The notes below the pieces were generated by a model. It did no database searches. It saw only the letters and a program-made list of their open reading frames with translations, and had not been told where the DNA came from. 64,000 nucleotides of DNA, taken from assembly GCA_907165135.1 (NCBI GenBank), contig OU015569.1:3658001-3722000 (forward strand), given 5' to 3'. The DNA is from Oikopleura dioica. Taxonomy: Eukaryota > Animalia > Chordata. Within the stretch, counting starts at the first letter, position 1. Each line of letters starts with the position of its first letter. The position numbers and the translations under genes are program-made. Below, piece after piece: positions 25,001-28,000 of this stretch.

Positions 25001-28000
25001 TTTCGATTGAAGCTTCACCTGTTTTGCAGTCGGACTTCGACTATTTCTCTCCAAAAACAAGCCAGTTCCGAAATCGGGGAGCTTCGTGAAAGAGCGGTTA
25101 TTTTTTGGGTATGCAGCGAGATTTTATTAAAAGAGATATGAAGCAAGAAAGAGCGAGCCTTTCAGAGCTGAACCTTCCAACCAGTCCCATAACGCGACTC
25201 GATGGAACTCTTCCAAAGCGCAAACCGTTTCGATCCTCAACAAAACGGGGACGGAATGAGTTTAATTTTGAAAAGGAAAACTCGGAAATTAAAAAGGAAT
25301 CTACCATTACCAAAACGTAAGTCAGCAGGGTTCCACCGCTACAAAAGAGGGCTTGGGTTCTGATCAAAGTTCCCGCGCCTCCTGGGGTGGTCACAAGAAC
25401 GTGCGAAATCGGACCGAGGTGTCATCCCTCTTCTCCTAGTGTCCGTTTTATTTCAGCTCAGAAGAGAGTTAAATACACTCAATTGATTATAAATAAGAAC
25501 ACTTCCCTTTTTTATTTCACATTTTTTTATCGAAAAGCTTCACTTGCACAAACTCCAAAATGCCCCCGAGTGGGCCTACCGACTTCAAAATATTTAATTC
25601 AAGGCACGAAAAATTAGAGATTCAAAGAAAACAAGAGCTCGTTTAACATGGTTTTTTAGGTCTCCTGCCAGTGACCAGGAAGCACTGAAGTACCTTTCCA
25701 ACAAACAAAGCAGACTGAATGACAGTAGTATGCAGGTATGAGAAGCTTGATAAGACGGAACAGAGGCCCCTCGATTCGAAATAGCTAATAGCAATATACA
25801 TCTGGCCGTGAAATATTTGCCGTGGCGATTTATTATGTCGCGTCTCCGCAGCTCCGTTGACCTTTCTATTGATTGCCAAGTCAAAGCGTAGCCTAACGAA
25901 AACACAGGATCACATTCCTATTGAGTGATCTTGTCTTTCGGTACACGTCACTCCGCTGACTTGATAGGTCACCGAGTTAATACTATCACTAAATTATCAT
26001 GTCTCTCAGAAAAACAAGCGACCGTTAAGTTGTGTTGATGGGAGAAACTTGCCAAAGTATGATTACATTAATTGAATGCCAAGGCATTTCCGAGGCCTCG
26101 AAGTGTAAAACTTATTCTCGTTTTAAGAATGAATGGGCACAGAAGAAATTGGCCTGGGTACCTGATGCTGAGCAGGGTTTCGTTCTTGCCACCCAGATTA
26201 GCGATCCCGACCCGAAAACCGGAAAATGCCAGGTGAAACTGTTGAACTCCGGCAAAGTCATCGAAGCAGAACAAACTCATCGCGTGAATCCACCCAAATT
26301 CGACAAAGAGGAGGACATGGCCAATCTCACCTGGCTCAACGAAGCCGCTGTTCTTCACAACCTCACTGAGCGATACCACGCCAGCTTGATCTACACCTAT
26401 TCCGGCCTCTTCTGCGTTGTTATCAACCCTTACCGAAACATTCCAATCTACACTGAAAGTGTAAGTAACAGTGATAGTATTTTTCATTGATTACCCATGC
26501 TTTCAGGCTATTGAGCTTTACAAAGGTCGCAAACGACACGAAGTGCCCCCTCACGTCTACGCAATTACTGACAGTGCTTACCGAAGCATGCTTCACGACA
26601 AAGAAGATCAATCTATTCTCTGCACCGGTGAATCTGGCGCTGGTAAGACCGAAAACACAAAGAAAGTGATCCAGTATCTGGCCGCCGTCGCCTCTCACAA
26701 ATCTTCGAACGGTCGAGCCGCTCATGGCGAACTTGAAAAGCAGCTTCTGCAGTGCAACCCGCTGCTCGAAGCGTTTGGTAACGCCAAGACTGTGAAAAAC
26801 GACAACTCCTCGCGATTCGGAAAATTCATCCGAATTAACTTCGACTCTTCGGGCTTCATCGCGGGCGCAAACATCGAAACCTACCTTCTTGAAAAAGCGC
26901 GAGTCATTCGACAAGCTCCAGAGGAGCGAACTTTCCACATCTTTTACCAGATGCTGCAAGGAGCTGGTCTCGACTACCGAAACGAGCTTCTCCTTGATAA
27001 CATCAACAACTACAAGTTCCTTTCATTCGGCGATGTCTCTATCAACGGCCAATCTGAGAGTGATGAATTCAAGGATACGCTTGCCGCCATGTCCACTCTA
27101 AACATTCCAAAAGAAGATGTCCACAGCTGCCTCCGAGTCGTCTCCGCCGTCCTCCATTTCGGAAACATGGAGTTCAAGAAAGAGCGAGGCTCCGATCAAG
27201 CTACGATGCCGGACAATACCGTCGCCCAGAAGGTCTGCCATCTTCTCAAGCTCGACCTCAACAACTTCACTCGTGCTCTTTTGCGACCACGAATCAAGGT
27301 CGGCCGCGAGTTCGTCAACAAAGCGCAAACCAAGGACGAATGTGATTTTGTCGTCGAAGCCCTCTCAAAAGCCCTTTACGAAAAACTCTTCCAGTGGGTT
27401 GTCTCCCGTGTCAACAAGAGTTTGGACCGAACTACTCGTCAGGGAGCAAGCTTCTTGGGTATCTTGGATATCGCCGGTTTTGAAATCTTTGAGGTTACTA
27501 TTCTTTCTTTTAGGAAAACAATTAGCCATTCAGTACTAGTGTTAGATTAGGGTTAGGCTACCTTAATGCACTTTTCTCAACCCTTTTAGATGAACAACTT
27601 TGAACAGCTCTGTATCAACTACACCAATGAAAAACTACAGCAGTTGTTTAACCATACGATGTTCATTCTTGAACAAGTGAGTATTCCTTATAACTATTTA
27701 TTTTCAGAAAAACTCCTATGAACAATTGTGCATTAACCTTACCAACGAAAAGCTGCAACAGTTTTTCAACCATCAAATGTTCATTCTTGAGCAGGTTACA
27801 GTCCACCTCAGTTCACAAAAAATGGAATTAAATTCCAGATATTGCCTCTAATTAGGCGAATCACTATTTTTTATGAAATATGCTCATTTAATTCTGAGCA
27901 TCACTTTTTTTCTTTTTCGACACACCAATGGACATTTTTTTACGAAGCAATCCTGTCAATTTAAGAGAATAAGAAACGCACACGATTTATTTTTTACTGG

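Follow-up and report, generated by a model that had tools for sequence, protein, structure and literature searches.

Can a chordate change the relay helix of a myosin II motor by choosing between two exons of a single gene, as insects do? The question is raised by a 64,000-nucleotide (nt) stretch of Oikopleura dioica DNA (assembly GCA_907165135.1, contig OU015569.1, positions 3,658,001 to 3,722,000 of the forward strand; hereafter the window), in which two homologous exons of a myosin II heavy chain gene, here called A and B, stand side by side. We consider it probable that A and B are conserved mutually exclusive exons of a larvacean non-muscle/smooth-type myosin II gene, one being used in each messenger RNA so that the gene makes two motors. 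These motors would differ at six of the 29 residues with which the relay helix begins. This helix centrally connects the ATP site with the lever arm and passes the motion of switch II on to the converter and to that arm. What carries this reading is the anatomy of the pair, its conservation, the selection acting on it, and RNA junctions that skip either exon, all of them observed; the choice between A and B may be regulated or tissue specific, and the two motors may differ in their kinetics.

The sequence-only reading of this DNA had proposed two 87-nt phase-0 exons with AG/GT borders and no stops, 31 nt apart, and every part of that description was confirmed where it had been placed: each exon comprises 29 stop-free codons, preceded by AG and followed by GT on the + strand. 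The parts of the gene on which the argument turns are these.

26507 to 27493, + strand: upstream constitutive head exon, from the P-loop to switch II, ending in ..DIAGFEIFE; its donor is the non-consensus GTTACT.
27494 to 27589, + strand: intron of 96 nt between the upstream exon and exon A, with GT..AG borders.
27590 to 27676, + strand: exon A, the non-muscle-type relay helix (..INYT..QQLF..NHT..), with the strong donor GTGAGT.
27677 to 27707, + strand: spacer of 31 nt between A and B, with a branch-like TAAC at 27691 to 27694 (distance to the A donor 17 nt, to the B acceptor 14 nt).
27708 to 27794, + strand: exon B, encoding the alternative form of the relay helix (..INLT..QQFF..NHQ..); its polypyrimidine tract is good and its donor, GTTACA, is weak.
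27795 to 28069, + strand: intron of 275 nt between exon B and the downstream exon, placed from the sequence.
28070 to 28156, + strand: downstream constitutive exon with the end of the relay helix and the relay-loop tryptophan, placed by the RNA joints 27676 to 28070 and 28155/6 to 28560/1.

Exons A and B match each other by tblastn with E ~1e-14, a similarity that is therefore not due to chance. They differ at 24 of 87 nt and at 6 of 29 residues (23/29 identical). Their divergence had been described as mostly synonymous, which proved inaccurate: by the Nei-Gojobori method there are 13.5 synonymous and 10.5 non-synonymous differences, or about half and half. A candidate mutually exclusive pair is defined by homologous exons that lie next to each other, agree in length and phase, and have splice sites of their own; this arrangement is present in the window and in five further lineages. 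A and B arose by local duplication of A, and no third relay-like copy was found in any flanking intron. The constitutive exon at 28070 to 28156 is likewise exactly 87 nt long and in phase 0; it has no sequence similarity to A or B, and its size is probably a coincidence.

Judged by phmmer scores, the host gene is a non-muscle/smooth-type myosin II heavy chain gene. Against chains in the PDB, the 329-residue exon 26507 to 27493 scores 474 to 507 bits with MYH10, MYH11, MYH9, and MYH14 and at most 321 bits with MYH6/7, skeletal, and Dictyostelium myosin II. Behind the head, an 852-residue open frame (28579 to 31137) runs on into heptad-rich, coiled-coil sequence, and relatives P0139, P0142, and P0147 carry Pfam Myosin_tail_1. 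The A/B exon aligns with residues 473 to 501 of chicken smooth-muscle myosin, 471 to 498 of MYH7, and 463 to 491 of Dictyostelium myosin II, and spans the relay helix from directly after switch II to EEY.

Evidence that both exons are used comes from a plankton metatranscriptome that is ~99% like the window (X1) and from three runs of bulk RNA to which the species name is attached (X15 to X17), in which 23 to 52 reads could be placed; because the latter are only 90 to 95% alike, they come from another (sister) lineage. One X1 contig runs from 28560 onward through 28070 to 28155 and on to 33 nt ending at 27676, and thus contains A and skips B. Another X1 contig spans 27262 to 27493 and goes on with AAAAACTCC, the first 9 nt of B; since these letters match neither A, the intron, nor the downstream exon and fit B alone, A is skipped in that contig. 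Run X16 has three reads on the middle of A and two on the middle of B, and X17 has one read with the joint 27676 to 28070, from A to the downstream exon, and three reads on B. The five B reads in these two runs carry synonymous changes only, and the variants at 27655 (in A) and at 27752 and 27758 (in B) are all third-position and synonymous. The bin 27836 to 27956, in the intron after B, has zero RNA depth in all runs. In the X16 and X17 samples, processed RNA thus contains A and B to a similar extent, though the numbers are very small. The earlier proposal of alternative, apparently mutually exclusive splicing is thus borne out, on a few reads and contigs, as far as the two skipping forms are concerned. 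Among the junctions it had named as a check, those from 27493 to the start of B and from 27676 to 28070 were seen; the joint from B to the downstream exon is taken up below.

If B matters, it should be kept in related lineages, and it is. Relatives, all of them environmental contigs, came from searching proteins with the flanking exons as queries, from scanning for a degenerate pattern of exon B, and from looking up contigs. The genomic contigs are L001, L005, L007, L010, and L011/L012 (of which Tara and JGI metagenomes supplied the last three), which together with the window make up six lineages; A followed by B is present in every one of them. Across the six, the A peptide has a single variable position and the B peptide varies at positions 1, 3, 7, 16, and 26, and the residues Y4, L11, F19, and Q23 that distinguish B from A are invariant. 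Non-synonymous divergence (dN) is at most 0.06 for A and at most 0.10 for B, synonymous sites are saturated in most pairs, and the ratio of dN to synonymous divergence (dS), omega, is 0.05 to 0.1 for B wherever dS could be computed. Invariant signature residues and a low dN against a saturated dS mark B as a maintained coding exon rather than a decaying copy. Conservation and dN/dS had been put forward by the sequence-only reading as a check on B, and what they reveal is strong purifying selection in six lineages, so that decay of B, which that reading had named as grounds for refutation, does not apply. The duplication is therefore older than the common ancestor of the six lineages, and B has been kept as coding sequence ever since.

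A closer comparison is possible with L001, whose protein is 98% identical to that of the window. At the nucleotide level, the constitutive exons are 84 to 90% identical, A is 85% identical, and B is 97% identical; the spacer is 90% identical, and the other introns reach 49 to 69%, the upstream intron 27494 to 27589 being just 49% identical. In the 87 nt of B there are 3 differences, against 13% expected (binomial P = 0.002), and in the 31 nt of the spacer 3, against 34% expected (P ~0.002 to 0.003). Among L007, L010, and L011, B has a lower dS than A in all three pairs. Constraint on silent sites and on adjoining intron sequence is typically the mark of a regulated alternative exon. A further block within the intron after B (27967 to 28008) is ~90% identical to L001, the remainder of that intron being 50 to 70% identical; it was not found in more distant lineages.

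Four contigs from a single JGI sample series (L002, L003, L008, and L009) are derived from RNA. Between L008 and L009, identity is 100% in the exons that were compared and 97.7% over 4.2 kb, but the intron that is retained differs between them, and L002, which represents RNA of the same species as L010, is without three introns (~52, 134, and 275 nt) that this genomic counterpart has; both facts identify these contigs as RNA. L008 and L009 are spliced from the upstream exon through A to the downstream exon. In L003, A is joined to the downstream exons and the upstream intron is retained, which makes L003 an RNA of the A form in which a single intron remains; we had considered it as a lineage that lost B and rejected that idea. 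In L002, the 275-nt upstream intron has been removed, but the 40-nt spacer is kept together with B and the beginning of the following intron. When L002, L003, L008, and L009 are set against L010 and L005, the order of intron removal around the pair varies: one partly spliced RNA has lost the upstream intron and still has the intron from A to the downstream exon, and another is in the reverse state, so either step can come first.

How is the use of one exon at a time enforced? Both exons are 87 nt long, and the reading frame therefore cannot do it. In all lineages A has a strong donor, GTGAGT or GTAAGT (GTRAGT), and B a weak one, which reads GTTACA, GTTAAA, or GTTTCA; the more pyrimidine-rich acceptor is usually that of B. 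Spacers measure 31, 31, 38, 42, 40, and 39 nt in the six lineages, and the other introns of these genes measure 42 to 933 nt; in L007, L010, and L011, the spacer stays at 39 to 42 nt next to introns of 212 to 933 nt. Every spacer contains TAAC 14 to 17 nt before B, a putative branch site that would lie 17 to 25 nt from the A donor in the six lineages, and the shortest introns shown to be spliced in these genes (42 to 46 nt) have CTAAC or ATAAC 29 to 31 nt from the donor. A spacer too short to be spliced may well be what makes the exons exclusive, an explanation to which we give somewhat better than even chances. Under this steric model, the upstream donor would pick the acceptor of either A or B. 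Once A is picked, its strong donor could not use the B acceptor, with the branch site just 17 to 25 nt off, and would splice to the downstream exon; once B is picked, its conserved weak donor, presumably with the help of a regulator, would splice to that same exon. The constant short spacer and its retention in the L002 RNA both fit such a step.

Exons 2 and 3 of alpha-tropomyosin are mutually exclusive through steric interference of this kind. Steric interference is a recognized mechanism for mutually exclusive exon pairs (PMC5740500), and the larvacean pair resembles such cases in having two exons, an intervening intron that may be too short to splice, and a length divisible by three. The criterion used in humans is an intron below 50 nt (PMC5740500); the larvacean lineage routinely splices introns of 42 to 50 nt, so its limit must be lower.

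Several findings weigh against exclusive use of the two exons. All nine spliced transcripts or proteins of relatives (9/9) carry A, which makes A the predominant form: it is the canonical non-muscle version, predominant in assembled transcripts, and B is a lineage-specific version. Three protein searches and a scan for a junction pattern turned up no assembled transcript or protein of the B form. The upstream-exon query returned genomic pieces and A forms only, the open frame around exon B returned muscle-type exons of other animals only, the downstream-exon query returned the nine spliced relatives, none with B, and a degenerate pattern for the B-to-downstream junction had no match in JGI contigs. 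In the RNA runs, the joint 27794 to 28070 from B to the downstream exon is not among the joints listed, none having reached the listing threshold, and the junction from the upstream exon to B consists of 9 nt of a single contig. Taken with the weak B donor, the nine A forms are what one would expect if B were an unused or decaying tandem duplicate and A alone functional. We regard this as highly improbable, since B is undamaged in six lineages, its two splice sites included, has an omega of 0.05 to 0.1 and four invariant residues, is more conserved than the constitutive exons in the comparison with L001, and appears in RNA both as reads and as a junction fragment. Only slightly more credible, and still very unlikely, is that B is a cassette exon or that A and B are both included, giving some transcripts a duplicated relay helix. 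Because both exons are in phase 0 and 87 nt long, double inclusion or double skipping would stay in frame and escape nonsense-mediated decay, and RNA depth is too low to exclude A-to-B junctions: the joint 27676 to 27708 is not listed, at a depth of a few reads, and with so little RNA the absence of reads containing A and B together is weak evidence. This alternative is countered by the two X1 contigs, one passing from the upstream exon to B without A and the other from A to the downstream exon without B, and by the L002 RNA, which keeps the spacer while introns of ~52, 134, and 275 nt have been removed. A 29-residue insertion in the relay helix should, moreover, disable the motor.

The steric step meets objections of its own. 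Its argument is not airtight, as the margin over functional introns appears to be a few nucleotides and the branch points are placed by motif; introns of 42 to 43 nt are spliced in the relative of L005, and one spacer measures 42 nt. Exclusive use could instead be imposed by competing RNA structures or by trans-acting repressors or activators, the short spacer being simply the normal intron size of the lineage. We hold this to be possible but, on balance, unlikely. The median intron of O. dioica is 48 to 51 nt (PMC8008620), the spliced introns of 42 to 43 nt come near to spacers of 38 to 42 nt, and a 5-bp complementarity between TAACC in the spacer and GGTTA at the B donor is conserved. That pairing, which came from RNAalifold, is too short, and both its sides are otherwise constrained, so we did not take it as evidence; nor did we so take a hairpin within B (-7 kcal/mol in the window and L001), which is absent in L007 and weak in L010. 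Searches for a conserved competing RNA structure or covarying helix, and for a k-mer or motif common to the flanking introns across lineages, found none, whereas a spacer that stays at 39 to 42 nt among introns of 212 to 933 nt, and a putative donor-to-branch distance of 17 to 25 nt against 29 to 31 nt in the shortest spliced introns, speak against this alternative.

What would exclusive use of A and B mean for the motor? Exon A is identical at 27 of 29 residues, by our own count, to the non-muscle sequence common to many animals, and its best matches in the PDB are smooth and non-muscle chains (49.5 bits). The sequence-only reading had called B striated-like, which is too strong: B is identical at 24 of 28 residues to MYH7 and at 24 of 28 to the non-muscle consensus, and its phmmer preference for striated chains is only ~2 bits. 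F19 (in QQFF) is its sole muscle state, shared with Dictyostelium, I26 is a non-muscle state, and Y4, L11, and Q23 are its own; the pattern INLT..QQFF is present in unnamed invertebrate myosin open reading frames. "Hybrid" therefore seems a fairer label for B, going by its residues.

On a helix turning 100 degrees per residue, positions 1, 4, 11, 19, and 23 all lie on one face, in an arc of 120 degrees (our calculation). Position 23, T in A and Q in B, aligns with H492 of MYH7, a relay-helix residue that in the primed state lines a pocket bordered by the N-terminal subdomain, transducer, and converter (PMC5543065). In chicken and Drosophila numbering it is residue 494, which is among those that vary between the Drosophila exon 9 alternatives (PMC13068310). 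The MYH7 counterpart of the invariant K15 is K484, a residue in salt-bridge contact with the activation loop (PMC11302452). With position 23 equivalent to H492/494 and K15 to K484, it is plausible that motors built with A and B differ in lever priming or product release.

Relay-region exon clusters have been described for the muscle Mhc genes of arthropods and other protostomes, and chordate muscle myosins are described as relying on separate genes instead (PMC3912159). The larvacean pair is like Drosophila Mhc exons 9a/b/c (cluster-7; PMC3912159) in that tandem homologous exons of a class II myosin swap a relay element to tune the motor, and the two systems share a varied residue, 494, which is position 23 here. 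Locust relay alternatives are cited in the same work that describes Drosophila exon 9 as 57 residues long with the relay loop included (PMC13068310). The differences are considerable. Drosophila Mhc and cluster-7 belong to a protostome muscle-type gene, whereas the gene studied here is a chordate gene of the non-muscle/smooth type. Drosophila exon 9 holds the relay loop and the invariant tryptophan in its 57 residues and has three versions, and the larvacean exon has 29 residues directly after switch II and two versions, with the tryptophan in the constitutive exon 28070 to 28156. Neither hallmark of the arthropod cluster, a muscle-type gene and an exon containing the relay loop with its tryptophan, is found in this locus. 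A different myosin II subtype, different exon limits, and local duplication of A together argue for an independent origin, as had been proposed from the letters alone: the gene is non-muscle/smooth, the exon has 29 rather than 57 residues, and it lacks the relay loop.

Vertebrate non-muscle and smooth myosin II genes are also spliced within the motor domain, by cassette inserts in loops 1 and 2 that change kinetics. Those variants concern the same myosin II subtype, but they alter surface loops, whereas the larvacean gene exchanges a core helix by means of a paralogous exon. Literature searches combining Oikopleura, myosin, and mutually exclusive splicing found no earlier report, and relay exon clusters were known before only in protostome muscle myosin genes.

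If this reading is true, relay-helix swapping, a classic of insects and protostomes, arose independently in chordates, on another branch of myosin II. Nature would then have run a compact experiment on how this helix governs motor kinetics, with six residues changed on a well-studied element, one of them at the lever-priming pocket of MYH7 H492. The spacer, short in every lineage, provides a simple test case for steric exon choice in an animal with very small introns. For annotation, the gene models and assembled transcripts that we found carry exon A only, and a B isoform is easily missed.

A second candidate for alternative splicing lies in the intron 28157 to 28560. It is a 21-nt phase-0 cassette micro-exon at 28308 to 28328, read as TAATAG, the 21 nt, and then GTAAGTAAG. 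Counterparts are present in L001, L007 (4967 to 5008), L010 (3299 to 3340), and L011 (9370 to 9411), making five lineages with the window, always 90 to 150 nt after the exon ending in ..IESP, and they encode GSIRNPA (window and L001), GSIKNPL (L007 and L011), or GSIKHRD (L010). The surrounding block, 28292 to 28435, is ~90% identical to L001, and the rest of the intron is 50 to 65% identical. RNA covers the block (an X1 contig spanning 28271 to 28528, and X16 reads); no micro-exon junction was seen in RNA, and all spliced relatives are without the micro-exon. Its inclusion might lengthen the activation loop, which contacts the relay helix. One could speculate that larvaceans use this single non-muscle-type gene for the jobs that vertebrates divide between cytoplasmic (MYH9/10/14) and smooth-muscle (MYH11) myosins, through a cell-type-specific relay swap and perhaps the micro-exon, with a spacer of 31 to 42 nt at the physical lower limit of intron removal, in the chordate whose introns are shortest, hard-wiring exclusivity; we offer this tentatively and think it rather doubtful as a whole.

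Smaller observations concern the ends of the gene. An Rfam scan of 25000 to 35000 gave no match. The 5' leaders of L002 (95 to 120) and L003 (70 to 95) have in common the motif GGAGGAGGTAG(C/T)GATCCCGG, at ~170 to 300 nt upstream of the start codon; a search of the window allowing up to 3 mismatches found no copy. The start of the window's gene is probably an open frame at 22070 to 22222, ~3.8 kb upstream of the head exons, which is followed by a GTACGT donor and resembles the Arg/Pro-rich N-terminal extensions of relatives P0002 and P0003. Joining this frame in phase to the exon that starts near 26088 was not achieved, and an additional small exon or another acceptor between 22070 to 22222 and ~26088 is likely. 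Closer to the pair, an RNA joint from 26460 to 26507 was seen directly upstream of the head exon.

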